DNA from: Oopsacas minuta
Taxonomy: Eukaryota > Animalia > Porifera
NCBI GenBank assembly: GCA_024704765.1
Contig: JAKMXF010000188.1
Coordinates: 615,015 to 679,014 of the forward strand
Reading direction: 5' to 3'
Length of the DNA stretch: 64,000 nt
Below, in pieces: positions 1 to 42,751 of this stretch. Positions within the stretch are counted from its first letter, which is position 1. The number at the start of each line of letters is the position of its first letter. The notes beneath the pieces were generated by a model, which saw only the letters and a program-made list of their open reading frames with translations, made no database searches and had not been told where the DNA came from. A program made the position numbers and the translations under genes.

Positions 1-143
1 GGTGAGGGTGTACGCTCCATTGGAAAAATTTAGACGAAAAGCTGGCGCGTGCTCTGTTTTGAGACATGAAATGTAGAACGAAAGCCCCCTCCAAGAATTG
101 AGGAGCGTAACCTAACCAGCCATAATTCCATGCCCCTCACCCT
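1..143. repeat. Small palindromic MITE-like element truncated by the window edge
   Basis: GGTGAGGG (1-8) pairs with CCCTCACC near 135-142, and TACGCTCC (11-18) pairs with GGAGCGTA (about 102-109). Confidence 0.45.
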
Positions 144-2740: not shown

Positions 2741-2980
2741 AAAGCCCTGTAATTTGCATTTGTTATAGAATTTGTCCTAAAGTAAAATTAAGTTATGGAA
2801 TTTATCCTACATGTAATCTCTCTATTTTGAAAACTTACATTTTATCTCCGCGAATAAGATACTCATCCTCATCAAGCGATCTGTACAATGTTTTACGAAA
2901 GCGATAGTGCACTTAACAATCACAAAGATTAAGATTCCGAAATTTCACTACTAGGGGTAAGCAGACTTGAATATAAGGTT
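2678..2980. mobile_element. MITE-like element with perfect 27-bp inverted repeats
   Basis: AACCTTATATTCAAGTCTGCTTACCCC (2678-2704) and its exact reverse complement (2954-2980). No clear TSD. Confidence 0.65.
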
Positions 2981-4444: not shown

Positions 4445-4910
4445 AAAAATGTCCAGCCGACAGACTGGTAATGCAGCTCAGGGTTATTTGTTTTGTTCTT
4501 TTCAGGGAGGGCACGCCCCCTGACCTCCCATGTATATGCCGCAATGCACCAGAATCCGACTAATTTTAGGTAGACTCATATAAGTGTACCAATGTTCATG
4601 TGAATCGGACTGCTAGATTTCGTATTTTACATATTAACTGCCTATAAAAATAAAAATCCCAAATCACAGTCTATGCGGACTTAAATTTATCAAATTTTTT
4701 AGTGGAGTATTGAAACTATACATTATTTATCAAATATCTATTTTAGCAAAGAGAAAGATAAAATTGAATTTTACTAATCTTATTAGACATTTAATATTGT
4801 CTCGAATTCCACGTCACTGTTTACCCCTATTTAACAGGTGAAGCTGATCTTTAGGATAATTTTGAAATGTTCACCAAAATCGTGAAAATATGATTAATCA
4901 TATGATAAAT
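4445..4910 (+). repeat. Dispersed repeat family B copy (AAAAATGTCCAGCNGACAGACTGGTA end)
   Basis: Near-identical start to the copy at 18464. Shares the GAAAATATGATTAATCA subrepeat with the other copies. Confidence 0.7.
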
Positions 4911-5614
4911 CAAAGGATATATATTTAATAGAGTGTATTGACCAATAGAATTACAGTCTACATGAATACAAATACATTACAGTGTTAAAATTCGCATACG
5001 CCTAGATGAAATCCTGGACCAAGGTTTGATCCAAGTTGGCCAACTGCAAAAACGTTAATGCACACCAATGGTAAGCCACTGTATTTATGAAAGGGGGTAA
5101 GAATCGGACGCAACAGGTCAGCTTTATAGAACTTGACTGGGACGTTGAATGTTCCCATTTAGGTTAGACCGTTTGAGTGAACAGGATAAATATATTCCAT
5201 TAGCTTTGTATTATCTGAACCAATAGAATTAACTCTGAATTCAATAGAAATCCTTTAATCCTTGGCTCAGGAAATAATTGGGTATATAGGCATTATATCA
5301 CTTAGGTAACAGTTAGATATATATTTAAAGGAATATTAGAATTACATAATAATCACCTTAGCACGAACACATATTATGAGAATATTGTTAAAGTTTGACG
5401 CCATTTACACCAAGTCATTGATGCAATATGTTTAGTTGTGTTGTGTTGTGTTGTATTTTGTTTCGTAATGGTTCATGTTGAATTTCTGCTTGCTAGGTGC
5501 TGTTGTTCTACCGCCTAATATAATGATAATACTCTATTTTTAGTTTCCGTAACCTAATTTAGCTCAGTAGATTGTACACATAACTACATAATAAGGAAAG
5601 GCGCAATAAAATCA

Positions 5615-8600
5615 ATGGTCCTACAGCAGATTCTAATTCTGCTTCTGGTATTCAGTCCCACTCTAACCGTCAGCACAGATATTGCTACTCCATTCTGTGT
5701 AGGTTCGCAGTATGAATACTCATATTCTTCTGAGGTAAGCATAAACAGACTATAGATTTCATTGCTATGTAATTATCACACTTTTTACCAAACGTCTCGT
5801 ACGAAAATAAATTGAAATCCAAGATAACAAATGTGTTAAATAGTCTGAATACATATTCAATTACATCCTCATACCTGGAAATTCTTTATTTTAAACCGGC
5901 TAGGTTGGATAAAGTGTGAACAACAGTTGATAATGTACTGTTAATAACATAGTATTAATTGACAGATTGTCATTTACAGATAACGTTGAATCAAGTGGAT
6001 AAATTCAACTTCAATGCAAAAGCTTTCCTCTTCGCATATGGAATGAGTCAGTGTGAAGAGACAGAAGGAGTTCTGATGAGAGTAGATCTATTTGGAGTTC
6101 TTAACTGCACAGCTGTACAAGTTATACTAACTGATGCTAAATTAGTTAGTGTAGAGGCTAAACAACATGGTCATGATATAATTGAACATCAAATGAACTT
6201 AACTCAATGGTTTTCTTTTTATCAGAGACAAGATGGACTTATCAGGTTTGTAATATTAACTGACATTATAATTACATAAATTAGAATAGTTAGTTCTAAA
6301 TTGAGTTTCTATAGCAAGGTACGCTATCCAGAAGAAGAAGAGAGAGCAGTATTGCAGCTTAAGAAAGCAGTGACAAGCTCTTTCTCTCTCAGATTGCATG
6401 AATATGTTAGGAAAAAGGGAACTGACAAATATGGAGGATGGGCATACCGTGTACCTGACTTGGATCACTCAGGGACTCACTCTGCTAGGTAAGTAACCCT
6501 ACAATACTCGTATACGTGTACGACTGTACGTATATTCGAAATGAAAAGCAAGAGCATAGAGAGACAGAGGTAGTGAACCCTCAAGATCACTGAATCATGT
6601 CCATTATGCATATAGTGACTTCTCAAAGCAATCGAATAAATAGTAACTCACTATATTAGCTATATTTTATTGGGTAAATTCTACTGAAACTGTTCATAAC
6701 TATAATCTATCATCTTTCAACTAAATTATCATTAAATGTCCTAATTTCAACTCTCTACACCAAATTAGAGCTGGATCAAAGTGATATTAGTCCCAGTACG
6801 CTTAATAAATCATTATTCACTTATTCATCAATTGCTTTTATACTAGTGAGGCGGATATGTCGACTAAATTACTTTTAACATACGTATTAGTACGTTTTTT
6901 AGTATTTATTATGATGAATGATGAATATAATACAATGGAACTCGTTATTAGCAACTCGTATTTTGCATGAATTTCTGTTGCTAATAGGGTAACATAATCA
7001 ATACAAAATCTATACTTGGAACCTGAAAGTAGGTTGCTAATATGCGAATATAGTCGAAATCCGAGTTTTCTTACTATGTTTTTATGCTCAGAGGTCAAGA
7101 ATGTGGTATTTACATACATTTTCTATCGGTTTATTCTTACTACTGTTTTTTTTACCTAATTTTCCTGCAAAATAGTAAGAAAAACGGTTTCGACTGTATT
7201 GCAATTAACCGAGTTGCTAATAAGCAAACTCTATTGTAGATGGATTTCATTCGGTTGTCTAGTCGAGATGAAATACTTCCTTAAATCTCTTCTTTAAGTG
7301 ATAAACTATGACAATAAATTTCACTGCCGCCAATGAAGATTTTGCCTGTAGTATGAAAATTCAATAAAGAATATTCTAAATGTACAAAATTGAACTGATC
7401 CGGAAATATTAGATACATTGTACAGGACTCCAAGCCTAGAATAATTTTATGCACATAAAGCCCTAGATCTTATCTTGCGATATAAATATTTATATACAAT
7501 TCGTTTCCATTGGAATACTGTGCAGTTGTTAGTTCTTATAGATATATTCTTGCTGTTCACTTTTTACTAAAATGGGGGCGTCTAAAGTAGATATAGCTTA
7601 GGGCCAGGGCCACAGTATGAGTCTAACCTAGACAAATACAATTATCCCTAGAGAATAGGTATAATTTCTAAGTTACATGAAAGAATTGAGAAAATATAAG
7701 ATTTAGAAATAGGTCTATCATAATTGAAGAGCATAATTGTTAGAGATAATTAGCTGGTACAGTATTGCATTTATTAATTAAAACATTATCGGTCTTAATT
7801 ATATAGTGTTAGATTATTACGCTAATACAATGCTACAGTAATGTCTAATTCTTATCATAACTATTAGAGAAGTACCATATTTTTCACCTTTTCACTGCAT
7901 CTTTATACTGAGTACTAAGTCGATATTAACATGTAATCACTATATTGAATATCAAGATTAACAATATCAAGCAGACAATAATTGAGTAACAACATACCTA
8001 TTCCTTTTGTAGTCATTTCATATGGATCCAACAGACTTACCCACATGACCACTGAATTAATTAAATTTTAAACAGAATGAGAAACCATTGAACTCAAATT
8101 GTTCCTTGTAAGTGAATAATATAAAGATATAATAAATATTGATTAAGTTATGTAAAGTAATATTCAGTGTAACTTCGATTAATCTGACTGGTTGGGACCT
8201 GTCAAAGCGTCCGGATAATCAAGGTCGTTTATACACAGTAAAATAGGACTTGGGGGTCAGGGGGCATGTCCGGATAATCAAGGTTGCACTGTAATTGTTT
8301 CTCATCTCCGCCAATCCCAAATTTTATTCCACGTCAGAAAAAACAAATATTTTATAAGCTGTATATAGCTATCGCAACTAGTGGCGTAGCCAGCCTTGGT
8401 ATAGTGCTGACGCAGAGGTAGCGCAAATACAGTACTTGCCACTGAGATCAACTATATTATAGTAAAGTTTTCTTAATTAGCTTTTCTATCTTGGAGGGAA
8501 GGTCTTATTGGATTAATTAAAACTCACTTAAATTTCTAATGAGGGTAGTGCAGTAACTACCCCCCGCGAGACTGCTATCGGGGGATGGGCAAGGTGTTTT

Positions 8601-17600: not shown

Positions 17601-20600
17601 ATAATATAATTTCATTAGAATTTACCTAAATTTAGATAAAATTTTACAACTGCCCGAAACAGAACTTTTTGCTCTCATTCATCAACTTCGATCCAGGTAG
17701 TAAGATTGGGGGGTAGCCCCCAATTCAAATAGTATCTTCAGGGAAAATGGGGGAACTCCCCCTAAATAGAGCCCTACAATACTTACATACCAACTCCTTG
17801 TAACTGTTTGACTGGATATTTTTCTCAAATCCCTGAATTTTCAAGATATTCCCTAGATTTATAATTTAATATGCAAATAATATGGATTTCCCCCTTTTAT
17901 GAGAAAATATGCCAGATATTTCCAATATTTTCCCTAGATTTAGTAATTTCCCCCTTAATCCTGAGTCAAATAATCCTTGGATAATCCAGGGATCACTGGA
18001 TGGTTGGCAAGAATGAAATGTTATGTCGATTTTGTCAAATAAATGGATGGCATATTTTGATCAATCTTTCCCAATAACTTGACGACATTTTAGAGGAGTA
18101 GCAGCAAAAAAAGATTTTTGATGGTAGCCTCTCAAAATACATTCAGTTTTCTACTAATTCGAAATATAATAGATATTTTCAATATTATTGGAGGGGTCAG
18201 GCCCACCAGCGCTACGCCCACGGGTGTACCGGATGTTACATTTCCGTTGTTCGGAGGCAAAGACTAGTACTTAAAATAGGATCAATAACGGTCTACTATT
18301 GACTTTCAGAGTAGTTCGATACGTAGAAGCTGCATTTCTATTAGACATATGCTCAATCTAGTCCGTGTGACGAGGTATCCCATAGTTCAGGGGTTGCCCT
18401 CTATTTGGAAGGGCTTTTAGGAAGGTTTCACTGTATTCCTGTACAAATCACATTGGAAAAGTTAAAAATGTCCAGCAGACAGACTGGTAGTGGAGCTCAG
18501 GTTTGTGTATTTTTGTTCTTTTCAGGGCGGCAAGCACCCCCTGACCTCCCGTGCTGATGTCGACATGCACCAGATCCCGACTGATTTTGGGATGCTGGAT
18601 CTGATAAATATTTCAGGATATTCAATATTATTCATCCCCTACTGAACTTCATGTTCCATCCTCAAATCCTATGGATAAAATTCTAAATAATTATACTACA
18701 ATTACCACCTATCTAACTTTTGAAAAGAAATCTCTAGCATCAATTTGAAATGTGCAAAAAGGTGTGAAAATATAATTAATCATATAGATATAAATTTGAA
18801 AATGTTAATTTTGTAACCTAATGCTCGATTACCCCTAACTAGCAGTTAAAACGAAATCTCAAGCATGATTTTGAATAATATGCAAAAAGGTATGAAAATG
18901 TGATTAATCATAAGACAGATCTGTGAATTTGTAACTTTCAGACTCTCAAAATCTCAAAATCGGACTACGCTCCCAATTACCCTGACTAAATGTTGAAACC
19001 TAATCTCTAGCTTGCTTTTGAATTTTCATGCAAAGGTGTCAAAATATGATTAATCACCAAAAGGTGTGAAATATTCACTTTAGAAAAATTCATATCCGAG
19101 TGCCGATCTCAGACCCGAAATGCATATATATACCAATTTTCACGTAAATCTGAGTGTTGGATTTGCACGACAGTGCAGACGAACTGACTTACGGACGTCG
19201 CACATCGTCTATGCCATTAGGCCATCTTCCTAATGGAGCTTCACAAAAAATTGATCCTGCCTAGAATTCTTTTAGAATTAGAGTTAATTCATCAAAAGTA
19301 CTATGGGGACCATTTTTGGCTGGCCAAATTTTGTCTCCCGGACCAATTGTGGCGTGACAGAGCTACATAAACTTTATTTGATCTATGGGTGGGGATAGTG
19401 AGATCCGAGTATTTACAGCTAGATATATTTAACCGTATGTTCTATCTGGAATTGTTAATTGCGATCTCCGATTATGTGCAGGTTTTATGCTTGATAGCAT
19501 GTACTAGGCTAAGTGTCGCTTCCTCCCTTCCCATATTCATAAATATATGTGTTATAGTGGTGTATTTGTACAGGCAGCAGATGTCATATTATCCTCTGCA
19601 CTGATAGACAGAGAAGAGATAGTTCGCTATGAGGCAACATTACAATATATTAGACATCCCAAAGCCGATGAAATGTCAGATATCCTATCTGACTATTATA
19701 ACTACACAAAGGTCCAGCAATCTCCAGCCGGAGCAACAAATCGTAGAATCAGGAGGTTTAACATATTCAATGCTTTATCGTTCCATCTACAATCTCCAAG
19801 TTTTAATTGGAGGAAACAAATTGGGAGCGATGAATTTGGTGCTTCAATGGGTCTCATTATACGTAATGTAGTGGAGCTTGATATCAAGCCATTGTCTGGA
19901 AAATTTGAGGTTGATGTTCATAATGAAGCCTATTTCGTTGCATACATTACCTATATTAATTTAAGATTTGATATCTTTCGTGCCAGGGTTTGCTTTAAGG
20001 GGTACATCGCATATAATTTTAATATTCTGCAAGAATTTGGCATTAACTCATTTAGTGATCTAGCGAACATCTACGATAGAACAATAGGCGCTGTGGTAAC
20101 ACCAATTAAACAAGCAGTGGAGAGTTTTCGAGGAGCTTATGGCGACGTAGATGTTAGTTACATATTTGATAGACTTGTGGATGCTGTTTCTGAATTACCA
20201 TTTATCATTGATAATCTCGTGGTTTCTCCAACATTACGTAGAATCCTCCAGCAGTTACAACAACTACCGTTTATCCAGAAAGGTCTCATGTTAATAGATG
20301 ATGTCAACTCATTGTATGAGGATGTAAGGAGCGATGTTTTGATGTTTTACCAAGAGATTTCTGATTGTGTAACGGTTACATTGCCTTGGGTCGGGGAAAC
20401 AGTAAAAAAATCGATCGAAACTATTGGCAAATCGATAAAAGAGTTCTTTAGAAATCCACTCACTGCAATACGTGATGTGATTGTATCTGTATTTCAGTTA
20501 AGAACTGCAATTGATGCTGTTATTGACTGTAAAGATGTTTTGATAAAATCGGCTAAATTTGAGGGAGCTCACATACGAGGTTGGATGGAGTTATTGAACC

Positions 20601-23600
20601 ACTTGGGTGAAATATACACTTCAACAATTGAGGCTAAAGAGCTAATTATGATGCAGGCACAAATATTTTCTGAAGCTAGAGATGCTTCTACTTTCGAACA
20701 AGCCACGGGACTCAATCTGACCATTTTACGAATCAAAGTCTATGAAGATCTGAGGGTTGCCCTTGATGAATTCATTCAGCCACTTTCATCCCTCCGAAAT
20801 ATAATAGATCCCTTTATTGTCGCTTTTGCAAACGCTATTCAATTAATCAAAAACACAATAAGTGCTTATGAGACCCTGAAAAACGCATTTGAGTTGGCTA
20901 GGAATCTTATTGAACAACTTTTCGGGCTTAAATTCGATCGAAGATTTCCAAGAAAGCTAAGAGGAGATGATGGATGTGAAGTGTCAAATTGCCAGTGCGG
21001 ATTTTACCCAACAACCTCTGGAAATCCAGATACATATAAGATACATACATATAAGCCAGGCATACAGCTTGAAGTTGTAGTTTTAAAAAGTTTGGTCGCA
21101 CCAACCAATGGGTTATATTTGCGAATCCCAGATGATCGAGTACTGATTTTTCCGTCTGGCTCACTTAAAAGATACGTTATAATGATACATCATGTAGCCT
21201 TGATGGATAATATCACATATGAAGGAATCAATGTGCAGAGTGGAGAAAAGATAGGTACTGTTACGGATACAGGATGTTACCCTAACTTTATCCATGTCAC
21301 TGTAATGACGAGATCTGGAAAACCCCTCGACCCATCTAGGTTTTTAAAACCACGTTCGTTAGTATTTCCGGAATGGATAGAAGAATGTAATGACTATAAG
21401 TTAGTTGTCCTAGGCGATGTGATTCGGGAAGGAGAGGTGATTGGAAAACCTGAAAAAGAGAAGAAGAAAGAACGTGGTAGTTGCACAGATGGAGAGGAGT
21501 GTACCGACGCGAATATAGCAAAAGGAGTCCGTCCTCCAAGAAAGAGAACCTCATATACACCAAAGCATCAACAATCCATTTCTAAGAATTCTAAAGCCAA
21601 AAGCAAGTTACTAGCAAATGCTACATCGAATGGACCGAATGGGCCCATGAACCACGAGATAGATACCGATCTGAAAGAATTCCTTACAAGGGAAGATATT
21701 GAAGAGTATTCCAACTCTGGAGATTTTAGTTTGGTCGTTGGTGGTGGAAGAGGGAAAGATTATAATTTTTCTGTAAACTCAATTATACTGGGAACACTCA
21801 TCGATGCTCTATCGGATTTAGACGATCCAGAGATAAATGAGGTAATAACAACTTTGGAAAATACCATTGACTGCATACGGGAGGCAGTTGAGTGTTCAAA
21901 TGACCAGTTAATTGATCCTTCCCTACTCGATCTCACTTCTATTAAGAGCTCCCTTAAAGTTAGAGGGTTATCCGCTGAGGGAGACAAGGAACAACTTTTG
22001 GCACGACTAATAGAGTTACCTACAGATCTCTGTCCTGATATTCAAGCTGCAATCCCAAGGAATCGTTGGTGCTCAATAAGCGACGATTGCTTGACATTGA
22101 AGTGTGCTGCAGCTCTCAAATTAGACTTCCTGTCCTATTCTGTAACATTCCAAATTACATTAGATCCATGTACTTCCTCCATCATGCTGAAATTTCAAGA
22201 CTTTGAGAGAGTTATTGATCTTCCTGCAATTTCTGGTGGTTTAGAGCTGAACATACCAATTGAGTCAGTTGATTTATTAGACATTGCTACTCTTAATTTG
22301 GGTGTGAAAATAGTACGAGATGACTTAAATATCTTTCTAAACTTCAAAGCTTATCTCTGTGCTCCAGATACGACTTCTGAAGATTATTCACATTGCTTCT
22401 TTGATATTGAACTTCTAGCTAGAGCTGTATTCAAGATTCCTAGCCCGTTCAATTGTAACTCGAATGAGAGGAAAAGAGAGACTAGAGAGATTGAAACAAG
22501 TGATGTGACTTCATGTGGCATACATATCCCAGATTTTAGTAATATGACCCTTGCTGAGTTTGTTACCTACATCAAAGATCTTGGGGATATAGGATCAGCT
22601 GGTGCCTCAACTACTAACATCAACCAACTTATGCAAGACCTGAGGAATGTGTTTCTGACTGATTTGTTGGATTCAATAATTAGTGGTGAGAGTACAATTT
22701 CAGGTGAAGAGACTGATTTCCCGACTACCTTTGATATTTGTGTTATGGGATCTTTTGGAGTCCAAAAAGTCAGAAACTTTTTCACCAAAGGTCGGATTGT
22801 AATTATCGGATTTGTTCCAGTGAGTTTCCTAATTAGTCTGGATGGATTTTATGGTGTTGACTTAAACCTGAAATTGTGTTTTATAACCATGGCTGCTTCT
22901 GCGGAGGTAATACCAAGAACTGGTCTAATTTTAACGGGAAGTGTTGGACTTTCGATTGCCATAGCTGAGGTTGGAGTAAAGTTAGTTGGAAGGATCCTTG
23001 ATACAAGTCTACCAATTCAGCCCACCATTGGGTTTAAAAAGTTTCCTCTAGCACTAAGAATTCGTATTGACTTGAAAATAATACCTCTGAGCATTTCTAT
23101 ACGTTTCTTTCTAAAAATCGAATTCACTTTATTATTTATTACGGTCTCGGAGACTCTTTTCGATCACGAAGTTTTTCACTGGAGCGCACCTGCCATCCTA
23201 ATCAATCTCTTAGATGTTACTAATGCTGAACAAGATGATTCTCCTCCCCTATTTTCACCAATTGCCGACTCGACGAGATCACGGCGCTCCCTAGCGACAC
23301 CTTGTGATGTGAGTCAGATTGTAGGAAGAGACTACACAGACCCAGCATTTTTTCTTCAGATAAACGTAGCAGATGACAAGAGTCAAGTAGAACTCACTTA
23401 CTCTGTGGGTACATATCCAGGAGGAAATGACGTAGTTAGAGATGATAGAATGAATGGCAATACTGTATTAATTGCTAGGCAATTACTATCCAGTATTCCT
23501 CTCTATTGGACAGCAAAGGCCTCCAACTCTCAGGGAGTGTCTGCCGCCAGTGAATGTAGTCTCCCAACTTATGATACTACTCTTCCAATTGGTCGAGTAG

Positions 23601-26600: not shown

Positions 26601-29600
26601 ATACGGACCTTGTGGGACAATTTTTCACGAAATAGGGAAGATCCGGAGAGGGCCCCCTTTCTATGGAGTTAGGATAAAATACGCTATACCTGGACCAAAA
26701 ATGGCACTTTCATCAAATAAATGAATAATTTTAAGCTTAAGCAGCTGGACTACAAGTATAATAATGTGAATTGAGAATTTAAATAGGTATCTACGCCTAC
26801 ACATGGTACATGGATTATGAGATTTGTGAGGATAATGTGATTACGCCTAGAGATCCCAATGAACACTCCACGACACCTCTCTCTGATATAAATCAGGGTA
26901 GAATATTTCAACATTTTGATGACGGGACATATTACGTGACAGTTCAGGCACTGAACAAGGTGATACTTGGTGGATCTGGTGTTCTCACTGTCTGTCATTC
27001 TACACCTTATACTATTGATACATCTCCGCCAGTCATTAGCAGAGTCATTCTCATTTCATACAATTCTAACACAAATCTATCTATCTTCGTGTATCAAGCT
27101 TGGTAAGTATAATAGTGTAATATAATTGAAGCTTAACTGTCTGGCTTTACCAACGGGCCAAGCAAAAACTATTGTGTCGACAATTGATCCTGCAATAGCC
27201 GGACGGACCGAACTGAATCCTCCAGCCTTGGACTTGCAGATTGCTGAGTATCATTGTTTGTCCTTTTGAGGTATTGGAATACCAAGAATATTATTTCGGA
27301 TTACTTGTCCAATATTTTGTATGGCAATGAAAATTAGATTCATAGTAAAGTGTCAAATTTGTATCTATTTTTTACAAAATTTCATGTATACCCTCAAGAG
27401 TTGTGACATACAACTAGAGGTGAAATGTCCTTAAATTTGTTCAAATTATTTCGTCGTTTCTATTTACACTACGTATATGTTCATGATTTTATACCTTACT
27501 TCTCCTTGAGGGATGTTGAGTCAGGTTTGAAGGCTATTGAGTTGGGAGCAGGTCTTACACCTAATGACATTTCTATACTCCTTTGGACTCCAATATTCGT
27601 CAATCAGACAGCTACAATCACTTATCGTATTGATGTAGCAGATGGACAGAGGGCCTTCATTCGTATTAAAGCAACTAATAATGGTAATAATGGTATAGTA
27701 CTAATTAAATCAACATCCGGTTACTCGAATGCTCGTTAACTCGAACGAATATTCACTCCCCATTGTTGTATATTTAATACTTATCGCACCGTTAACTCGA
27801 ATGGATTTTGACTTCCCCTGAGGTTCGAGTTACCGAATGTTGACTGCATACAGTAATTATATTCTACATTTAGTTGATCTCGAAAGTGCCTCCTACGCTC
27901 CAGAACCGATCATTGTTGATCGTAGCCCTCCCATTCCAGGAGTCGTGCTTGACGGAGATGGGTTCGGATTATCAGACTTCAAATACCAATCTTCTGCCTC
28001 AAAGATTTGTGCAAAATGGAAAAACTTCTTTGATCCTCAATCAGGAGTCTCTGCTTATCGTTGGGGAGTAGGCACTGCTCCTGGGATGTCAAACATTGTA
28101 GCTTTTACAGAAGATCTTCCCTCTGACCAGAATGATATCTGTAGAGATGGTTTGACACTCCAACATAACACCACGTACTACTCAACTATAATAGCATTCA
28201 ATGCTGATACTCATCAGCCTAAAAACTCATCTGCTTCTTCCAATGGTGTCCTTGTAGATCTAACAAATCCAATTGGTGGCTATGTTCTTGATGGTCTAGA
28301 AATTACCAACACTATACACTACACTTCCAATCCTACCTTAGTGCAAGCAGTGTGGGGAAACTTCTCAGATCCGGAGTCTGGTATTTCTCAGTATAACGTT
28401 ACTATTTACGTTGCCAATGTATTGCAGTTTTTGCCAGCTACCAATCTTGAACCAGATCAAGAATGTCAGATTACATCTACCAACACAATAGTCCCTACAA
28501 GACAGCATTTTATACCCCCCAGTGATGTAAGTAATATCTATTATGCTGTAAACAGGGCCGTCGTGGGGTGGTTGGGGGTGTGTGTCAGGGTATATACTTG
28601 GATGCCGCTTCGTAATGGTGCAAACATGTTGTAGGCGCCTCTGTTCGAGCTATCGATGCGCATTGATGACACTTTCATTCATACGACGGTCTTGATGTTA
28701 GGTTATAATCTTAGTGGGTTAACTCATGGGCGTAAACGAGCAAATCGGGCCGCGATTTGACACCAAAAGACATTATTTTGAGTCTAAGAGTTGGAATCTG
28801 TTCAATGTTGAATGTTAGATATAATACAGCAAAAATTTCAAATTTAATTCCGAGTAGGCCTCTGGGCCGCCCGAACATTTTCGGGTGCCCGGGTCGTTTA
28901 CGACTAAGGGTTAACTATCAGTATACTGAAATGAATCGTAGAATACTTGTGTTTTCGTGTTTTTATCTTCAGAAGGATATAAATTGGATTAAATACCACC
29001 AATCTCGTCCGTAAAGAAATTTCTGCTCGATTTTATCTAATGTCTCCACACATAGGCTTGATAGAGCCATTTTGGGTGGGCGGCTGCCCACTCTGACTCG
29101 GGAGCTTAGTTGCGCTAATGTTTCCACAGACTTAAACATTTCAATACATATTTAGGTTGAGTTTAGGATAGCACAAGAATCATTGTCTGTTGGCTTAGAA
29201 CATCAAATCCACTACAAACACTTTCATTTCTCTCACGGTGAATACATAAGGACAAGAGTTACAGGACAGGATGGTGCCACAAGATTAACTGAAGTCACTA
29301 GTCAAGGTATATTATATTACCATATTTCCTTGAATAGTAGCCTGGTCGATTAGTAATTTCAACCCTCTTATGAGGGAAGTTATGATCTTTCTATACACGT
29401 AATGTCTTTATCATCATCCCTATGTAATACGAACCAACCGCTTGTAACTGTTTCCCTGGATTTTTAAAAAATTTTGGATTTCTAATATTTTTCAGAGGAT
29501 GCAGTGTTTATATGATTCGTACTAGTATTTAACTAATGAATTATGGCTTTTAGGTGTTTTAGTCGACTTAACACCACCTAAGATAGTCCAGCTCTACGAT

Positions 29601-32600
29601 GGTGCTAATTTCGGGATAGACGAGTCATACCAAACATCCATTACAGTACTACATGCATCTTGGATAATGGTGGACAAGGAATCTGGAATTTCAGAATATC
29701 AACTATCAATATATGCCAGGAGTCAAGGCTCAACCTCTAAATTCTATCCAGAGGATGCTCCCTACATTACTTTGCAGCCACAAGAAATTGGAGAATCAGG
29801 TATTCTTAACTGCTGGACTGGTAGAGACATTCCGTTGAGCATTGGTACACTCTATACTGTGAGAATTGTCCCAGTGAACCGAGCCAAACTCTCTACTATC
29901 TACACGTCAAACGGGATAATTCCAGACAATACACCACCTGTAATTGATTTTGTACACATTGGTACATATGGTGATGAGTCTGAAGAAATAACTCCTCAAG
30001 AAAATGCGGTAAGTAAGAAAAGTACTACATATTACGAGATTTGTCTCTGGCAGCAAACTGACCGTCCGAACTGTAGTAAAGATCGGGTTAACTGGCATAA
30101 CTTTAATATTACGTACTTCTAGGTTGAGATTGGTAACTCTGGTAAAATTCCAGTACAGTGGTCAGCAAGCGATTCTCAAAGCGGGATTATTGGATTTGTA
30201 GCAGCAATAGGAACCAGTCCTGAAGGAATTGACACATCAGACTACACAGAATACTCTGCTTCAATCAATGTTGGTATACCTGTACAGCTACAATTGTTCG
30301 AAGTTACTGGAAACTACTACTATGTGACAGTGCGAGCTAAGAACGGAGCAGGGCTTCTCTCCGAACCAACAGTATCCAGTAAAATTAAGGTTCTACGAGC
30401 AAATGTAGCTGGGGTAGTGACTGTAGGACACTCTGGTATCGGAATAGATGGAGGATTCCAAGCAGAAAGTGACACAATAACTCTGAAATTTGATGGTTTT
30501 TCTAGTGAATTGTGTGGCATACAATATTTTGAGTGGTCTATAGGGACAAGTTTCGCGGGCGATCAAATTCAGGAATTTACCACTGCTGGACTTGTAATGG
30601 GAGAAGATGGGTCAGGAGTGTCACAGGCACTTGTACCATTGCATTTAGGGAGATTAACGTATACTGAAGTGAGAGCAATAACAGCATGTTCCTCTGGAGA
30701 TGGACAAGCAACTATCAATAGTTTTGGACAAGGTTAGATCTATTACAGTTACAAATAATACTCTCTTGAATCTTGATATTTTGCGAGCATACACGATTCA
30801 ACATTATTGAATGGTATTAGACAAATTCCACGGTAAAAGTATACAGGATTGAAATAAATTCAATAATACATATTGCACAGCTTTATTGCATCATATATGT
30901 TTGGTATTAGAGTTAGAATGTGCTAATTTGTAATTGCATTAGACTCGAGCTACAAATATACATAATTTATGAAACGCTCTATTCGCACTATTTTACGATT
31001 TAGTATAGCAATGAAAATATATTAAGAGATCTATTTTTTGTTACAATAATATCTTAATTAAATGTACATTGCTGTTAGCGAGTAGATACAAGTACAGTAA
31101 AATTTGGATATTACAGGACATAGAATACTATATCATACAGATAGGAAAGTAGACAAGTAACGAATAAATAGAATGGTCATGTGAATAAATCTCATAAAAG
31201 TTAAATTAAGCCTTCAAAGTTTGTGAACTGAACTTTTCAAGGTAGAAAGATGTAAGGAATCAGTTAAGACTACTAAAAAGACATTAATTAATCGATATAC
31301 AAGAATTTCAAAAGTAAAAAATTCAATTTTTGATGAGCATTTATGTGAATGTTGATGATGTCATGATTTGAATGCGCCTAAACGAGGATGAAGGATGGCC
31401 GTTAGAACCTTTTGAGAAGTCTTAACTGATTCTTTACATTTTCAAGTCACAAACTTTGGAGGCTTGATTGAACTTTTATGAGATTTATAAAAGTAGCCTC
31501 TCTTTTATATTCGTTGCTCGGTTACTTTCCTATCTGTGTTATGTAGTAGTCTATTTATGGGATAATCCAAGGAGTTGTGGTCTCCGATTGAATGGACAAT
31601 TATTGACAGGTTGCATTATATTATATTACTTGTAATTGTTTCTAGCAATACTGGTGGACTGGACTAAACCTAATCTGATACTAACAGAGTTAGGACAGCA
31701 AATTGATGGAGTAACTTATAAGTATCCTCAATCTGATGACAAGATATATCAATACGACCCATCTACACTTGTAGCTAGATGGAGTGCTACAGATCCTCAA
31801 AGTGGTATTAACAACATACAATATCACGTGGGCACTTATCCCTATACTGCTAATATACAGCTGCCAAAACTTACTCGTGGAACTAGTCTAGCCTCAAATG
31901 ATGTGGAACCAGAAAACACAGGAGAGCCGAACATACTCCATCTCATAGCATTCAACAAGGCAGGTGTATCCACATTCCTTATCGCCCCTGGTATCACTAT
32001 AGATACACTTATCCCCAATACTGACCAATTACGATTCACATGTACCCAGTACGCTGTCACCACCACTAGTTCATTGGTATGTAATTGGTATGGAGCATTT
32101 GATGAATACAGTGAGGTCAATGGCTATGAAATAATGTTGGGAGAGGAGGAAATAGATACAACCTTCTATTACGAATACTTGGATAGAAATGCCATTACGG
32201 TGACCATCAGGAATTTCACCAAACCACTAGAAGTAGGTGATCAGGTGTACACACTGAATGTTATTAACAGTGTACGACTGAGTAATCATGCGTTTGCTCC
32301 TTTAACAATTGATGATTCTCCTCCCATTCCTCAGTCTGTATTCGTATTGACTGATCAAACACAAGTTGCCTTCTTTCCTACTGGTGAAGTTAACTCTACG
32401 TTCAATTACGAGAATGCAACGTCATCTGGAGTTCAGTGTAAGATTATCGTCACAGATATTCATATTAGATGGGAGGATTTCGTTGACCACGAGACTCCTA
32501 TGGATTTTTATGAGATTGGGATTGGAGAAAAGCGAGGACAAATGAACATTGTGAGCTTCTTCAACGTGGGTTTAGTGAACGAGTACTTTATTGAAGGGTT

Positions 32601-35600
32601 AGACCTGACGCGTTATAAAGTCATATATGCAATTATTCGAGGAACCAATCGAGTCGGCCTGATCCAAGCGGCGAATTCCAATCCTATCTATTTGTCGTTA
32701 CGATACCCCGATCCTGGATACGTGTATGACGGCTCTGAATTCCAAGACTTAGAGGCTCAGGCTGGTATCACCTTTCTAGAAGGTTATTGGAATTTCAATG
32801 ACCCTTGCCCTGCAGTGCACTATGACTGGGCAATATTCTATATGAACCAAACAACCATTCAGAACTTTACACGTGTTGAAACTAGCCACTCCTCGAACGA
32901 TAACCTTGCAATGCAACAAGATACCAAGGTTTATATCAGCGTAACAGTTTACAGTTCTATTGGTTATGTGAGATCTTCTCGGTCTAATGGTATCACTATT
33001 CAAGTTGATCCTCTTATCCCAGGAGTAGTGTATGATGGTCCTGTCCCTGGATATGATTTTGACAGTCAAGCATCCTTGACTTCCATAATTGCCAATTGGA
33101 ATTCATTTGGAGGTACTGATCCAGAGAGACTCTCAGAAATGGTTATTCAATATGAAATAGCAGTAGGGACGGGGTGGAGAGGTGAGGACAGATTCAACGT
33201 TGTGGAGTATGAGAATATGTATCTGAACACTTCTGCAACGCTAAGAGGACTTGAACTGCAAAGAAATACCTCTTATTACGTCACAATTAGAGGTACAAGT
33301 GGCACCTTCCAACAGGCAGAGGCAACTTCTAATGGAATACAACCGATAGAATTCAATAATATTGCTGAACCAGGTTCTGTAGAGATCCCTTCATTCCAAT
33401 CTGCCACAACACTGCTTGACATCACTTGGAAAGATTTCACCTCATTACTTCCTATTGCATTCTATGAATACGCAATCAGTACTGATGGAAATCTCGCCGA
33501 GTTTTCTTGTGAGACTGTGGAGAACGCTGCTGACCCTCTCGACGAGTACTTCACTGTTAGACAGTACACTAGAGCTGTATTACAAGCTTCAGTGGTTGCG
33601 GATAATTTGCATCTAGTAGGAGCTACCAAATACTACGCTTATGTGCGTGCAATTGATAATTCATTTCAGTGTACAGCTGCTGTCTCCCATCCAATAGTTA
33701 TAGACACTACACCGCCTATTCAGGGCAAATTCAATATAGGATTCAATGTTACTAGTGTACGACCTGAATTAACTGAAACTCAGATCTATTATATAACCGG
33801 AAATGATACTCTAGCTGTTCATTGGGAAGGTTTCTTCGATCCAGAGAGTTATATATCCAACTACCAGATCGCAATCATTGAACAAGATAACTGCAATATT
33901 CACAATTGTGATGAGATAAGTGATTTGACAGAATTTACTACGATTAACAATGTGAACAATTATACATTCTATGTCATCCAACTTGTGACAAGTAAATTCT
34001 ACTTTGTGGCTTTACGTTCTATCAACCAAGCAGCACTCACATCATGTAGCGTGTCACAGCCTATCAAACTGGTAAAATACTCTCTCAATCCAGCAGTAGT
34101 TAAGTACGGAACAATCTGGAAATTTTCTCCTCCTTACCAAGGGAGTACCTCTAGGGTTGAAGGTGTTCTAGCTCTTGTGAGGACAAAGCATGATGCTGTG
34201 TGTATGGAACGTATGTATAATCAAAGTTCCACGACAGAAGATTGGGACACAATCACTCAGTCAATCACTTCTACAATCCCAGTAGGACCTAGCAATCCAA
34301 CAGGCAGAACTCTAATGTATCACCCTCAACAGATAGAATTCACTACTGACAGTGCATTTTTAAAGGTCAGCATGACGCGAGACATCCAACGTGAGAGGAT
34401 GCTCTCTGGTGCTGCTGTCACACAGATGTCAGTAGTAGACCTGAATGAAATGAGTGTTAGCATCAAGGCTGCCCCTGAATTCCAGGCCGTCACTTCTGTG
34501 TTATTCTGGGACGGACCTGCTTCAATGGTTCAGGAATATGAGATGCTTTATGAACTGGAAAACGTCACACAAACTAACTTCGGCCAAAATCTACCAACAC
34601 AAACACCCAGTACATGTCAATACATGCCTCCTCCCAACCCCAACCCAGTACCCTACAAAGCGTTTGGTCTCCAACTACACCCCTCTTACAATTCCAGCCC
34701 TGCGAGAGCTTTATTCTGGTACAGAGGTCAGACTCCTGAAGACACTGGGTACACATGGATAGATCTAGACTATGATCCTAGTGCTGCCTTCTACACGTAT
34801 GACTTTAAACTCTACAGAACCAGTTCAACTACTCCTAGTACAGCTACACTTGGCACCTGGACTGTGGATTTAGTGGTAGACGGCCAGTTCTTAGGCAATC
34901 TTGTTGATCTGCCTCAACTGAGATCTAGTATCTACCTTGTATTACATGTCCGGAACTTTAACGGAGGAGTAGAGTCGTTCTCAAATCCCTTCTTTCCTCC
35001 TACTACCTCGGCCTATTTCACTGATGTCAATCTTCCAGCTGATAGCAGTCGGGTTTGCAAATTTGGAGCACCATTCTATAGCCCAAAGGCACCATTTGTG
35101 AAGTTTGAGGTTGGAGTAGGACGAGAGTATGGTTCTACTGAGGTATCTCTTGCAGCGGGTCGAGAATATCAGTCTATACCCTCACCATGTATTCCTTGTG
35201 TTGAAGGCTGCAACAACTCACTACCCAATCTGTGTAACTCTACATGCAATTCCAACGTCTACTATATACAGTTTGTAGCCAGTGGGCTCAGTTTGCAATC
35301 AGGTTGTACTCATCCGTTTAACCTTACTAACGTGACATGTACTCCCTACAACTATACTGACACAGGTATTCCAGAGGATCAACTATACCAATACAATATC
35401 ACATTTGTACCATATGTGTACTATATGAAGGTGAGAGGATACACGGCTACAGGAGAGATAGCTTACGGCTACTCAGATGGTATTCAGCTAGATACAACAC
35501 CTCCTAACTGTACACTTATACAACATGTACAAAGAGATCTGAGAAGTGATCAGTTAATACAAACGAGTGCTCAGGATAGTGACAATTCACTGGCTGTGGA

Positions 35601-38600
35601 ATATCAGTGTGAAGACACCAAAAGTGACATATATGACTATGAAATAGCTTACTCGGATAATGTAACTGATATTGATTCTCTCCAATTCACTTCAGTGGGC
35701 ACAATCAAAACCGCGAATATAACCAATCTCGAGCTGATACCACAACTCAAGTACTATGTGATTGTTAGAGCCATCAATGGTGCTGGTTTGAGTACAATAC
35801 TGGTAAGTCAGGGAGTGAGGATTATGAACCAGGAGCCGGACATTTCTAAATCTGTCATAGAACCTTTGTATTCAACAAAGATCGATACAATAATTCCAAA
35901 TACTTTCCTATCTACACAACTTACTTCTCTCGGTTTGCATTGGACTGGTTTCTATCCTACTCATTATGAAGATAATTACCTTGTAAAGAATCAAACTATT
36001 TTCTGGAAAGTAGGCACAGAACCTTACAAGGATGACATCATGCCCATTTTCGAGATAACATTCGGCAATGCTTCCTCCATTCGTATTGAAGGATCTCAAT
36101 TAATTGGTAATGGTAACTCAAACGATCAAGTTATTGCAAATACTCCTGATATAATAATGTTGGCGAATAAATCAGCAGGTATTTATACCGGGAGTGAAAA
36201 TATCTTACAAGCAGAACCTGGAATGATTTTGTATCAAACTCTCGTACTCTGTGCTATTCAACCTAAATGCAAAGATGCTGGCACACCATCAGTTACTTAT
36301 TATAGAGATACTACTGATACATATGCTGTGTACCAACGTAATAGTGAATATTACCTTTCTATTGAGGAAGGCTTTGCTGAATATTCTTCTGGATTTTCTG
36401 GCCAATTCATCCCTCAACTAATCTATCCAACCAACTGTAAAGTTTACTTCTCTGAAGACCTGCAAGATTTATCTGGATTTGTCATTGGACCCCTCTCACT
36501 CAGTGATATGAAGGTTAATTATGACATCCTCTCTGTCCCTTTCAGCTCTCCGTATACGCGTTACATTGTGGATCCTGGCTCCACCCTCACCCAAGTGGAC
36601 AGATTTCTCTTCACCCGTATACAAGAGTTCCACGGTCCCTCTTTCTACATAAGTCCTATAGGCGGAGTTAACTTCCCTTCTTGGTTGAAGATTGAAATAA
36701 AATTTAATGCATCTCGAATTGTTGAAACAAATCAACCATTTCTTGTTGGTTGGAACCCTGAGCAACAGCAATGGGTATCTTCTCGTAGCAGTTGTAACTT
36801 CGATAAAGAGGATACTATAACTGGTGATACACTGACAACGTATTTCTGTCCTTGTCTGCTATCTAATGAGGTTTGTTTTTCTAATAAATATAATTGTTGG
36901 TTGTCTGTTTGTCAGTTGTCAAGGACAGGGTTTATGGTATGTTAGTCAAGATCAGATTTTTGCATTTTCAAATAAATTGTGCCATACGTAAATATATTGT
37001 TACTGTATTAATTAATGATATGAATATGGTGCAAACAATATCGCAATTCCTCAAACTTTACTAAGAGACTTTAAATTATGGGTTACATTGGGGTAACAAG
37101 GTACGCTGGATCAAATTTTTAGTGCAGCTCCTATAGGGAGATGCCCTAATGGCATGGACGATGTACGGAGGCAGTGCGAAATCTAGCGGTCCCATTAAAT
37201 GAAAATTAGTGTACATATAGATACATTTGGATCGGATATTTTGCCCTTTTGGGGATGAACTTTTCTAAAGTGATTTTTTCCCATCTTTTTGGTGATTAAT
37301 CATATTTTCACACCTTTTTACACATATAGTAGTCTCATTAATACGAACACGGTTAAGACATAAATCCAGTTAAGGAGTACGAATTTAGCAGTCCCCTGGT
37401 GAAAGTATTAACAAGACTCTACTGTATTTCAAAATGATGCTAGAACTTTCGTTTCAACTTCCAGTTAGGGGTACAATACATCCTCACTAATCCAGACAGC
37501 ACTGTTCCTATTACTAGATTAGCGAAATGCTCGGAAACGATACTATAGGATATAGGGGACATTTTTTCGAAAGTTATACAAACGATGAAGGCTGCAAACA
37601 TGTGTAATATAACAATATGTATTTGTCCACACTACAATTGGATACAATTAGTTATTTTTGAACATTTTAAGACATTTTCCAGGAGATAAATAATTATCCC
37701 TTCGGATCTATTCGGATTAATGATGATTCGGCTTAACGAGAGTCTACTGTAAGAGAGCATGTTTTTTCTATTATGATATTTTCATGTTCATACTTTTAGC
37801 ATATTACTAAAAATAATGCTAGAAATTCGTTTGAACGGGTAGTTAGGTGTTCAAACGAATTTATAGCATCATTTTTGAGTAATATGCTATATTGAAATCC
37901 AATTTTGATTTTTTCAAATCTCAATCTACACGATTTATCATACAATTAGTCTTATTTCTACCAATTTACAACAAATATTTTGTATTGGGTAGGGATGTGA
38001 CAAGGGCGGCGGAAGGTGTTAGGTGGCGGTCAGGCTTGATCTATATTAAAGTGGTCAGGCCCGTGCCATAGAATTGAGTAGGACAAGGCAAAAGTAGTCA
38101 ATACAATATCTATTATTCATTTATTGTTGTTTTTATGGACTCTTACTCAGAAGTATTACAATATTAGCATGATTCCGGTTGCGTCACCTATACCGAGATT
38201 CGGTCTAATCAATTTTGTCGTTCGCTAATGTTAGTCAATTCAAATTTCATAAAAGTATTTATACTTTGCATATACGTATTATGCTATACGCATTAATACT
38301 TGTACAGCGGAAACCCCTATTAGAAATTCGTCTAATAGCAAAATCCGCCTATTAACAAATTTTTCATGGACAAAGAGTCCAGTTTTGTATCGTAATTAGT
38401 ATGTATAATAGCTAAATTCGGGTATTAGTTGGAAAATTCTTGCAAAATTCGATTGCTATTAGGTGATTGCAATTGTATGTAATATGTATCCAATATTCTA
38501 TAGCGTTGTAACAAGCCCTGGCAGTTTATATTAGTAGTGGGGAGTGCTACATTTGATGATACTCCTCCCATACCAGATCAAGTCCCGTGTATCAGCATTG

Positions 38601-41600
38601 GAGAAGGTTCGGTAACCATTCAGCATCTCATCACCTACACAGACATAGAACATGACACTGTGAATATCAGTCTGACATCTGTCACATTCACACGAGCTTC
38701 TTCTGAGTACTCTCTTGCTGAAGATGGGACAAGTTTATTGAATGCTGAAATAAATGGAAACATATTTTACTTCACTCCTTGTAGTGGTTGTTATGGCAAC
38801 CTATCCGTGCAGTACTCACTAACAGAGACAGGTAATCCAATGTATATGTTGCTTGTACAGGAATATATACCTCGAACGATCTGTATCACTTTTGTCTATT
38901 AGCTAAATTAAATATATTTCAGAGTTGGAAAAAATCAAACAAAATCAGATTATTTCGAGTGGGTTTACACACCCTTATTTTGCCAATTATTTAAACCAAT
39001 CTACAGTAAACTCTCGTTGTACTGAAGTGCTGGGAGCCTCGGTTTCATTTCATTATGATCGGAGTTTGTTGTAACCTGAGTACGTTAATGCACAATTGTT
39101 TGTAAAATAATGTCAATAATAGCGGAAGTCTTTTATCTAAGTTCGTTAAATCCGGAGTTTATGTAATAAAATATCAATTTGAGCGGTATTAGTTCAACTG
39201 GGGTTGTTATCAGCGGATTTCGTTATAACGAGATGAAATTCAATAGCTTTTGACATAAAGGGGATAACAAATAACTTGGTTATAAGCAGAATTTCGTTGT
39301 ATCCTTCCATGTATTTGTTATAAACGAAGTTTTATAATGTAATTAGATGGAAGGATTTAGGACCATTAGACCACTTCGTGATAACGGGAGTTTACTGTAT
39401 ATTATCAAATTGCCATTTTTGCCTGTTTGTTTGTTTGTCTATTTGTCCGTTGTCAAAGAAAGGATTTATGGAATGTTGTATCGAATTCGAATTTCTCAAT
39501 ATGAGATGTTGCATAACTATGTATTTATCGTTTATACCAAAAGTAAACAGAATTCAATATAACTTAACTAAATAAATCGAATGTGCTGAATCTGATTTCC
39601 ACACTTTTGAATTAGTCATATGTAAATTTATTGTTATTTTATGAATAGAAAGAAAATAATTTCTTGAGATGCCACAATAATAGTAGAGACTTGCTCTTAA
39701 CTGCTACAATGGCTTAACAAAGTACGCTGAATCCGAATTTCGCATTTTCAAGTTTTCATATTTGTGATCTAGGAAATTCTTTGATTCTATATACATATAT
39801 TCCCATCAGGTACTCCTTCATTACTTGGCACTCCATTGTATGCAGATAATGAATTCCTCATCGAGATACTATCAGTTAATGAAAATCCTAAACTAATGAT
39901 AGACCAGGAAAATGTCAATTCCCTCATTACTCTATACAGGACAGATAATACCTCAGTAGTTACCCTACAACTCACAGGATATAGTTATGATGTGGATGAT
40001 GGAGATTATGTGTATTTCAGGTAAGATAATTCAGCATTTGAAATATGAAATCAAATTAATATTGCATACCAGAATGAGTATTGTCATTTAATACTTCCTC
40101 AGGTATCTAAACTGTTCATACTGTAAACTAGTAGTGAGCGAGATTTCTCCCTCTTCCAACCCAAACATATCTGCTCAATACACAACTTCAAGTAGAAATT
40201 TCTCTCTTAACTACACAGCTCTAGCGTACTACTATGGGACAGACCAATTTGGAATTGTATCATTGGACAGATTTGGTGCATTCTCTCTAGCTTACATTAT
40301 AGTAATCTCTATAAGATTTAAACCCTGTCTTAATGACGCAACTTGTAAGGTATGTGAGGGAGGCATCGAATTGTAGTATTTGAATATTTGCTGAGTGTAA
40401 AGAACTGTGAAATTAGAATTTAGAAAATCATGTTGTATCTTCATAAAATTTTCTTTTCATTTAGGGCCCAAATAATGATCCTGATTGTAGCAAAATTATT
40501 GAAATCGAAGACTTCTCCAGTGAGTATTCATGTGAGTGTACGGAAGAATGGGCACTGAGGAGATGTGATAAACCCAATCTCTGTCTCTCTCAGCCCTGTC
40601 ACTATAACGCCACCTGTCAGATTAAAGAGAATGGAGATTATGAGTGTTTATGTGAACCTGGATGGCGTTGTTCTCAGATCTTAACTCCAGGAGAAATATC
40701 TGCTGTCGTATTATCAATTGTGATTATTCTGCTAATTATAGCAGTTGTGAGTCTTATAGTGTGCGTCTATCTTATGCAGAAAAGGAAGGGAGTGTACAAT
40801 ATCGGGATTGCGTAAGTACTTAAACAGTAATTACATTATCTTCATAGACAGTATATATGTCTATGAAAATAATGTAATTACATAATTTATCACATGATTA
40901 TTTATATTTACTGTGCCGACTATACTTTAGTATAGTCAGCACAGTATTGAAATGGTTCCCTTTTTGTATTGCTTTTAGTATAGCATTTTTGCTGAAAATA
41001 AATGAAAATATTCATTATATAGCATTATGTCATCGGTAATAATTCAATTGTTCTTAGATGTTAAATCTAAATTTAACGGTAGCTTTAATTATTTATATTA
41101 TATTTATGAATAAAATATTTTTAAAATTAACCATGGATAATTTATAAACATGTATTTCTCCGATTATATAACCTTGGAATAATCGTAGGAGATTGTTCTA
41201 AACAGCAAAAGGGGGTAATTCAATACGCTGATTCCGAATCTGACACTCTTGAATTTGTACCGATCAAATCTTCTCCAGTATTCCCTTCTATTAATATTAT
41301 TTAGTCAACTGATAATTATTGCAAACAAATTGAACATTATATGAATTGGATATTCATAGTAAATTGTAAATATATTGTATGGTGGATTTCCCCCCGCGAA
41401 AAGAACAAAAAAATTACAACCTGTGCAGACAGCTTAGTCTATTAAATTCAATTTGTTTAAAAAGTGGCACTATTAATTGAAGGCACCAAGTGTAATGAGA
41501 TTAAACCTAACCTTTCATAGTGCCTCCAATTAATAGTGCCACTTTTTAAACAGATTGAATTTAATAGACTAAGTGGCACTTGGCGTCCGATTTGATTAGT

Positions 41601-42751: not shown

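Follow-up and report, generated by a model that had tools for sequence, protein, structure and literature searches.

A single sponge gene predicted to encode a 5,103-residue, membrane-anchored relative of the large lipid transfer proteins

The large lipid transfer proteins, that is vitellogenin, apolipoprotein B (apoB), apolipophorin-II/I and microsomal triglyceride transfer protein (MTP), have in common an N-terminal Vitellogenin_N module, consisting of a beta-barrel and a helical HEAT-like part, right after the signal peptide. To our knowledge, all characterised members are soluble and are either secreted or located in the lumen of the endoplasmic reticulum, and we know of no treatment of the vitellogenin/apoB-type proteins other than as soluble, animal-specific carriers. 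A different kind of module arises where an enzyme fold has lost its chemistry, a pattern known from LECT2, from EnvC and NlpD and from the glucan-recognition proteins of invertebrates. LECT2-type M23 domains bind proteins as well as bacterial products, and in the beta-1,3-glucan recognition proteins (also GNBP or LGBP) an inactive GH16 jelly-roll is the module that binds glucan or lipopolysaccharide (LPS). Here we describe a sponge locus in which modules of these three kinds are encoded by one gene. The analysed window is a stretch of 64,000 nucleotides (GenBank assembly GCA_024704765.1, contig JAKMXF010000188.1, positions 615,015 to 679,014 of the forward strand), to which all coordinates refer. 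The gene at 5615..42751 on the plus strand encodes a protein of 5,103 amino acids (aa) that belongs to an ancient, uncharacterised family and is not a sponge invention. Within the lipid-transfer superfamily it is a form without precedent, anchored in the membrane, built of many modules and of pre-animal origin.

Gene model and RNA evidence

The locus is a single gene of 20 exons. Every exon border has the form AG...GT, and the coding sequence of 15,312 nt runs from the ATG at 5615 to the stop codon at 42749-42751 with no internal stops. The model was rebuilt without the exon list of an earlier note on this DNA, using open frames, tblastn of two Oopsacas proteins and RNA joints as inputs. For each gap, the frame-preserving GT/AG pairs were enumerated and then scored against two proteins of the glass sponge Oopsacas minuta, LOD99_10427 (2,527 aa) and LOD99_10426 (2,464 aa). 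The independent rebuild coincides in span, exon count and length with the gene proposed in that note, and gives the following coding exons:

5615-5734, 5980-6245, 6315-6488, 9096-9202, 10788-11026, 11237-11751, 13125-13335, 19574-24410 (+): coding exons 1-8, from the model
26787-27102, 27511-27683, 27874-28526, 29156-29306, 29554-30008, 30123-30732 (+): coding exons 9-14, from the model and RNA joints
31646-36870, 38504-38831, 39810-40020, 40103-40349, 40465-40811, 42625-42751 (+): coding exons 15-20, from the model

The dominant plus-strand open reading frames (ORFs) of the region have 1,640 and 1,769 codons, and two of the exons stay open over 1,612 and 1,741 codons although the genome has 35% G+C, which is far above chance. 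Across the window, the G+C content is 30-43% and the genes are intron-rich. The predicted protein is 59-63% identical to LOD99_10427 and LOD99_10426. The same exon borders were found in a contig of a related sponge (loci L002 and L003), in which exons 5-19 are matched at 47-83% identity; a further locus, L001, was considered as a transcript and rejected, being a genomic contig with introns. By sequence comparison, introns 1-7 and 15-19 are supported through the colinearity of the orthologues and the exon borders kept in the related sponge contig.

For the central part of the gene, four runs (X1-X4) of one source sample were compared over 26700-32699. Runs X2-X4 are DNA, since their depth was flat and their contigs were unspliced. 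Run X1 is RNA, because its word depth was high on exons (157-299) and low on introns (3.5-6.7). Spliced X1 contigs with GT..AG joints were obtained across 27103-27510, 27684-27873, 28527-29155, 29307-29553, 30009-30122 and 30733-31645 (introns 9-14), exactly at the modelled borders, and one of them, 1,095 nt in length, covers 29156-29304, 29552-30007 and 30122-30611. A loose end of X1 before 26786 has 30 letters that are identical to 24380-24409, by which exon 8 is linked to exon 9. A single transcript thus extends across exons 8-15. The earlier note had proposed RNA junction reads as a check on its model, and over this interval the introns turned out to be spliced as predicted.

It is at the join 29306>29554 that LOD99_10427 stops and LOD99_10426 starts in the Oopsacas annotation. 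These two adjacent models, of 2,527 and 2,464 aa, would suggest that the locus consists of two or more separate genes and that the long model is an artificial fusion. In the spliced RNA contig, however, 29304 is followed in frame by 29552, at a depth equal to that of the flanking exons, and four other phyla have single predicted proteins, of 4,600-5,360 aa, that continue in colinear order past the split point. Moreover, LOD99_10427 departs from the alignment just past the conserved donor and continues into intron-like sequence, and LOD99_10426 starts at a methionine within a repeat unit that begins upstream in the window. Because of this overrun and this internal start, the two-gene split is most likely an annotation artefact. 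The existence of separate genes has hence been largely refuted already and we consider it next to excluded; the public Oopsacas annotation would be corrected from two genes to one.

Two observations on the same reads concern intron sequence. At ~31100-31560, in intron 14, the DNA runs rise to 875-1,107x compared with 73-557x nearby, with many loose ends at 31356 and 31554; this segment resembles a repeat of high copy number, which also accounts for the elevated RNA depth of the segment. The contigs of all four runs, RNA and DNA, have an additional G after 28737 (intron 11, non-coding), which reflects either an error of the reference assembly or an allele.

Domains of the predicted protein

The features of the protein are, from the N- to the C-terminus:

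5615..5674 (+): signal peptide, aa 1-~20; hydrophobic N-terminus by hydropathy, the Oopsacas orthologue begins alike
5615..19621 (+): Vitellogenin_N lipid-transfer module, aa 1-~560; exons 1-7 and the first codons of exon 8
19622..20956 (+): conserved ~445-aa region between the head and the M23-like domain; beta-rich start, then long helices
20957..21355 (+): M23/LECT2-like domain, aa 1006-1138, with degenerate zinc site; profile, AlphaFold, Foldseek and motif columns
21356..23842 (+): basic linker, then a conserved Cys-containing stretch of ~700 aa (~830 aa together); colinear with Mytilus, Haliotis, amphioxus and chytrid proteins
23843..24016 (+): PAN/apple domain, aa 1968-2025; Pfam PAN_1 27.2 bits, cut-off 21.4
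24293..34062 (+): first FN3-like array of ~14 units, aa 2118-3748, exons 8-15; jackhmmer self-search and motif scan
34312..35049 (+): GH16-like beta-jelly-roll, aa 3832-4077, with degenerate catalytic strand; fold searches and motifs
35050..36870 (+): Cys-rich segment (aa 4078-4221), two FN3-like units (aa 4222-4454), then 230 aa; Pfam fn3 41.3 bits, cut-off 25, and jackhmmer
38504..40349 (+): exons 16-18, aa 4685-4946; faint Cadherin_4 match, 60-79% identical in the related sponge contig
40465..40677 (+): two EGF-like modules, aa 4947-5017; Pfam EGF 29.4 bits, cut-off 21.5, in two stretches
40696..40773 (+): single transmembrane (TM) helix, aa 5024-5049; Kyte-Doolittle mean up to 3.56 over 19 residues
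40774..42751 (+): cytoplasmic tail of 54 aa (5050-5103) ending in ETIL; end of exon 19, exon 20 (42625-42748) and the stop codon

The M23/LECT2-like domain gave a weak match to Pfam M23 in 5 of 10 orthologues. A PDB profile search of the region returned LECT2 first, followed by LytM, PrgK and DipM, and the alignment to LECT2 takes in the Cys-x-Cys-Gly-x-Tyr lead-in. In the AlphaFold model, the core of the domain has a predicted local distance difference test (pLDDT) score of 80-94. Foldseek against PDB found 53 chains at E<=1e-3, which were M23/LytM without exception and included the inactive EnvC, DipM and SpoIIQ; the Swiss-Prot fold matches were led by NlpD, YgeR and the C. elegans LECT2 homologue, and an Atlas feature search gave the correct M23 lead for exon 8. 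In all sponge sequences, the columns of the HxxxD motif read K/R-x-G-x-Q and those of the HxH motif F-I-H. Of the three zinc ligands only one, the last histidine, is kept, and the catalytic histidine is lost as well; to judge from these residues both zinc binding and catalysis by the sponge domain are very unlikely. The amphioxus domain keeps HxxxD and the last His, and the protein KAK3589057.1 of the freshwater mussel Potamilus streckersoni has complete HxxxD and HxH motifs, as the sole such member among those aligned, and possibly represents a peptidase that is still active. Because of the motifs retained in these two animals, the ancestral domain may have been active as well.

By sequence, the case for the GH16-like domain is marginal: a profile search against PDB gave the GH16 glucanase 3wvj as the sole match (E 0.17), in two colinear pieces flanking the catalytic strand, and Pfam PF00722 matched 2 of 14 orthologues below the cut-off (best E 0.05). 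Fold searches with the structural model left no ambiguity: Foldseek against PDB reached an E value of 2.6e-8 and nearly all of the top 50 matches were GH16, while the Swiss-Prot fold matches were xyloglucan transglycosylases and Bacillus glucanases. VIA aligned 177 of 214 lichenase residues with a Z score of 15.7 and a root mean square deviation of 3.2 Å, and its top 50 entries were all GH16. In the sponges, the catalytic strand has the sequence (E/D)-Y-E-x-L, compared with E-I-D-I-E in lichenases, and the strand of the deuterostome relatives is likewise without the acid/base Glu. The GH16 fold is retained without its chemistry.

At the N-terminus, exon 6 by itself matched Vitellogenin_N (PF01347) with 19.9 bits (E 3e-4) in a relaxed Pfam scan; the Pfam cut-off for this family is 24 bits. 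The cut-off is exceeded in Oopsacas (30.6 bits), Patiria (62.7), Capsaspora (59.6) and Spizellomyces (46.7), and also in the Mytilus, Mytilus edulis and amphioxus relatives, and the first 544 aa of the window protein are 63% identical to Oopsacas. A five-sequence N-terminal profile searched against PDB found designed HEAT-like repeats only and no lipovitellin or MTP, the profile being probably too shallow. The following ~445-aa region is conserved as far as Mytilus, Patiria and amphioxus. An AF2 model has one long helix there, at aa 926-994, and an Atlas feature search with aa 545-998 returned nothing usable.

In the Pfam scan of the large ORFs of the window, PAN and fn3 were the only families found, and the relaxed scan added EGF as well as weak M23 and Vitellogenin_N matches but no GH16. 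The region 21356..23842 matched no family in the Pfam scan, and its Atlas search (aa 1250-1960) gave weak Ig/FN3-like leads and nothing usable. Many of the FN3-like units open with (V/I)D-x-(T/S)-P-P, and the array showed repeat matches to Oscarella and Acanthaster proteins. With a length of about 3.5 nm per FN3 domain, ~16 FN3-like units would form a stalk of roughly 50-60 nm. Exons 16-18 probably encode Ig/cadherin-like beta domains, as the colinear position of the proteins from scallop and acorn worm is matched by Cadherin_5 and Big_9. The hydropathy scan detected two hydrophobic segments only, the signal peptide and the TM helix, from which we infer a type I single-pass topology in vivo with a short tail. 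The tail exon, exon 20, is proposed on the basis of the donor GTAAGT at 40812, a good acceptor at 42624 and a faint match to the Oopsacas tail, which ends in ETVF compared with ETIL in the window protein. After exon 19, an in-frame stop lies within the consensus donor GTAAGT (40812-40817), and the arrangement is the same in the sponge contig L003. Retention of intron 19 would yield an isoform with a tail 11 residues shorter and without the ETIL end.

The domain reading of the earlier note has held up in these searches. Its lipid-transfer module was recovered through Vitellogenin_N over the Pfam cut-off in orthologues and the conservation of the head in Oopsacas, its M23-like fold through the uniform Foldseek matches, and its GH16-like fold through VIA together with Foldseek. 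Its single gene, signal peptide, FN3-like stalk, TM helix and short tail are supported as well, as are the EGF modules.

Relatives and neighbouring genes

A profile made from the first 1,000 aa of exon 8 was searched against 1.84 billion representative proteins and found 690 proteins at E<=1e-3, of which 204 were at E<=1e-10. Long animal relatives occur in Haliotis (5,123 aa), Branchiostoma (5,244 and 5,363 aa), Ylistrum (4,640 aa) and Saccoglossus (4,932 aa), and also in Argopecten and Potamilus. Outside the animals, they occur in Capsaspora owczarzaki (4,741 aa) and in the chytrids Spizellomyces punctatus (5,053 aa) and Geranomyces (5,052 aa). The shorter relatives are proteins of crinoids, further molluscs and the choanoflagellate Salpingoeca urceolata. 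Vertebrates, arthropods, nematodes and cnidarians were not among the names sampled, a sample of 30 named clusters that does not imply absence from these groups.

The long animal relatives are colinear with the window protein over most of its length. With abalone, blastp gave one high-scoring segment pair (HSP) joining window aa 1-4768 to Haliotis 1-4490 at 1,458 bits, and with amphioxus a single HSP over window aa 145-4980. Identity to molluscs and deuterostomes is about 27%; the chytrid protein aligns in colinear pieces at 21-25% identity, and the Capsaspora match lies chiefly in the region from the head to the M23-like domain (aa 400-1138), plus two short pieces. As predicted orthologues we list Oopsacas LOD99_10427 with LOD99_10426, Haliotis asinina XP_067664253.1, Branchiostoma XP_078620548.1, Saccoglossus XP_006820036.1, Ylistrum XP_060074374.1, Capsaspora KJE92161.1 and Spizellomyces SPPG_08216. 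The M23-like domain is kept in every listed orthologue. The GH16-like domain is kept in abalone, scallop, acorn worm and amphioxus, that is, in four of the five orthologues with a colinear match that far. The C-termini vary, being a TM helix, a C-type-lectin-like end or a somatomedin-B-like end; the TM helix is present in the sponges (including Oopsacas), the scallop and the acorn worm.

All long relatives carry only the labels "uncharacterized" or "hypothetical". In the published literature, we found no description of this domain combination, nor of lipid-transfer modules outside animals (in Capsaspora or chytrids), and the Oopsacas genome paper makes no mention of LOD99_10427 or LOD99_10426. 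The earlier note had recognised no named or characterised protein with this architecture, which agrees with these results, and had supposed that uncharacterised relatives may exist; these do, and reach far more widely than it guessed, to Capsaspora and chytrid fungi. Because family members are present in a choanoflagellate, Capsaspora and chytrids, the origin of the lipid-transfer module is moved to before the split of animals and fungi. The results also define a large, conserved and uncharacterised family, two domains of which have the folds of enzymes but presumably serve for binding. There are reports of genetic tools for Capsaspora and Spizellomyces, so that the function could be tested outside sponges.

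Further ORFs were noted in the window. Within the 6.2-kb intron 7, the ORF at 15075-15584 (-) has a hAT-family C-terminal dimerisation domain (46 bits) and is probably a transposon remnant; the minus-strand ORFs at 15989-17019 beside it matched no family in the Pfam scan. An intronless ORF of 959 aa at 49045-51921 (-) matches the N- and C-terminal domains of Integrator subunit 5 (64 and 101 bits). The ORFs at 47913-48572, 54212-55444 and 59158-59979 (all -), which match Sec20, an NHL-repeat beta-propeller and the ALIX V-domain, are ordinary neighbouring genes.

Possible function and comparison with described proteins

Taken as a whole, the data are best explained by one gene for a type I membrane glycoprotein that probably functions as a non-enzymatic, multivalent binding or adhesion receptor. 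From the outside inwards, the 5,103-aa glycoprotein would present the lipid-transfer head (~560 aa), the helix-rich region (~445 aa), the LECT2-like M23 domain, the ~830-aa region, the PAN/apple domain and ~14 FN3-like units, followed by the GH16-fold jelly-roll, two FN3-like units, the Ig/cadherin-like domains, two EGF modules, the TM helix and the 54-aa tail. The two enzyme-derived folds would serve as binding modules and not as enzymes and, together with a lipid-binding head, would sit at, or be distributed along, a stalk of some tens of nanometres. It is this arrangement that leads us to a receptor or adhesin that would act multivalently at the surface and bind lipidic as well as glycan/peptide ligands, which might be particles, microbes or neighbouring surfaces. 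The short tail could link the protein to cortical scaffolds. The reading as a receptor draws on two enzyme folds with lost chemistry, on the stalk-plus-anchor design and on the binding of microbial polymers by vitellogenin. Vitellogenin of fish has been shown to bind LPS, lipoteichoic acid, peptidoglycan and glucan and to act as an opsonin for microbes (PMC2277463). The capture of microbes would be plausible, and we tentatively suggest, at somewhat less than even chances, that lipidic or microbial material would be the captured ligand.

Several points weigh against this reading or narrow it. Among the 19 introns, RNA evidence covers introns 8-14, and introns 1-7 and 15-19 are placed by colinearity. 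Exon 20, with the tail, is the weakest part of the model and provisional; it was not found in the related sponge contig L003 by relaxed tblastn and regular-expression searches. Lipid binding by the Vitellogenin_N head is an assumption, because the open beta-sheet domains of the lipid cavity (C- and A-sheets) had no Pfam match in exon 8, even at E<=5. The GH16-like model has a mean pLDDT of 50 and values of 70-89 in the strands, giving moderate confidence, and its catalytic strand was placed by sequence motifs aligned to 3wvj, not by residue-level superposition. Since the active sites of both the M23-like and the GH16-like domain are degenerate, the ligand specificity is not readable from the folds. 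Membrane anchoring is not a constant of the family, because the abalone, amphioxus, Capsaspora and chytrid models have no C-terminal TM helix. The earlier note had suggested that the protein could capture microbes or lipid particles, for example in a filter feeder. The filter-feeder framing is weakened, since the family predates sponges and filter feeding and is present in grazers (abalone), amoebae and walled fungi; its occurrence in walled fungi and an amoeba speaks against a role specific to filter feeding.

Among the other explanations, a purely structural adhesion or matrix protein deserves the most attention, and we regard it as unlikely but well worth keeping in view. Here the FN3/Ig/EGF ectodomain would serve cell-cell or cell-substrate attachment, the LECT2-like domain and the jelly-roll would be protein interfaces, and neither microbes nor lipids would be recognised. 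The ~16 FN3-like units and the cadherin/Ig-like, EGF and PAN modules are typical of adhesion proteins, and the fold matches include the C. elegans LECT2 homologue, which we take to work in a cell-surface adhesion complex. The family also occurs in the aggregating Capsaspora (PMC11399711) and in chytrids. This explanation leaves the Vitellogenin_N head, kept at the N-terminus from chytrids to amphioxus, unexplained, and no homology to known sponge aggregation factors was found. We give poorer prospects to the idea of a precursor, in which cleavage after the M23-like domain would free a soluble head-plus-M23 particle of ~1,200 aa as a lipoprotein-like carrier, while the stalk stays on the membrane; this would be comparable to the processing of insect vitellogenin and apolipophorin by proprotein convertases. 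Stand-alone proteins of Patiria (1,217 aa) and amphioxus (1,194 aa) do end just past the M23-like domain, a choanoflagellate has a protein of 1,180 aa with a match to the part ahead of it, and in the window the domain is followed by a K/R-rich linker with an R-K-R triplet; the other sponge orthologues, however, do not share this basic triplet. If the M23 and/or GH16 domains were active, the protein would be a lytic enzyme bound to the surface and directed against the walls of bacteria or fungi; this view could invoke the confirmation of both folds and the freshwater mussel relative with its complete HxxxD and HxH. Yet the first zinc His and the Asp are replaced by K/R and Q, and the first His of HxH by F, in this sponge and its close relatives, and the acid/base Glu is absent from the GH16 strand in every aligned family member, which makes active enzymes highly improbable.

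A more far-reaching proposal, improbable on present data, is that the lipid-transfer module, and possibly the LECT2 domain too, had its original home in this family before animals arose. The opisthokont ancestor would then have had a giant sensor or capturer of lipid particles, on the surface or secreted, from whose head vitellogenin, apoB and MTP descend. Lipoproteins and host lipids induce the aggregation of Capsaspora, and the word "receptor" is absent from the main text of that report (PMC11399711). If the proposal were true, the Capsaspora member would become a candidate sensor for aggregation induced by lipids or lipoproteins, a suggestion that is speculative.

Returning to the favoured multivalent receptor, its closest described counterparts each share one part of it. 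Compared with the large lipid transfer proteins, the sponge protein adds ~4,500 residues and a TM anchor, the open beta-sheet domains of the lipid cavity were not detected in it by Pfam, and its family extends beyond animals. With LECT2 and the degenerate LytM factors EnvC, NlpD, DipM and SpoIIQ it has in common an M23 fold without a working active site, and these proteins bind partners rather than cleave. LECT2 is a small secreted single-domain protein that keeps all three zinc ligands (His-Asp-His) and has no catalytic His, whereas the sponge domain keeps the last His only and is embedded in 5,103 aa. With the beta-1,3-glucan recognition proteins it shares a GH16 jelly-roll that has lost its catalytic residues. 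The sponge domain showed no significant similarity to these proteins in sequence; it has its best structural matches among bacterial lichenases and plant xyloglucan transglycosylases and, in contrast to the recognition proteins, sits in the middle of an FN3 stalk.

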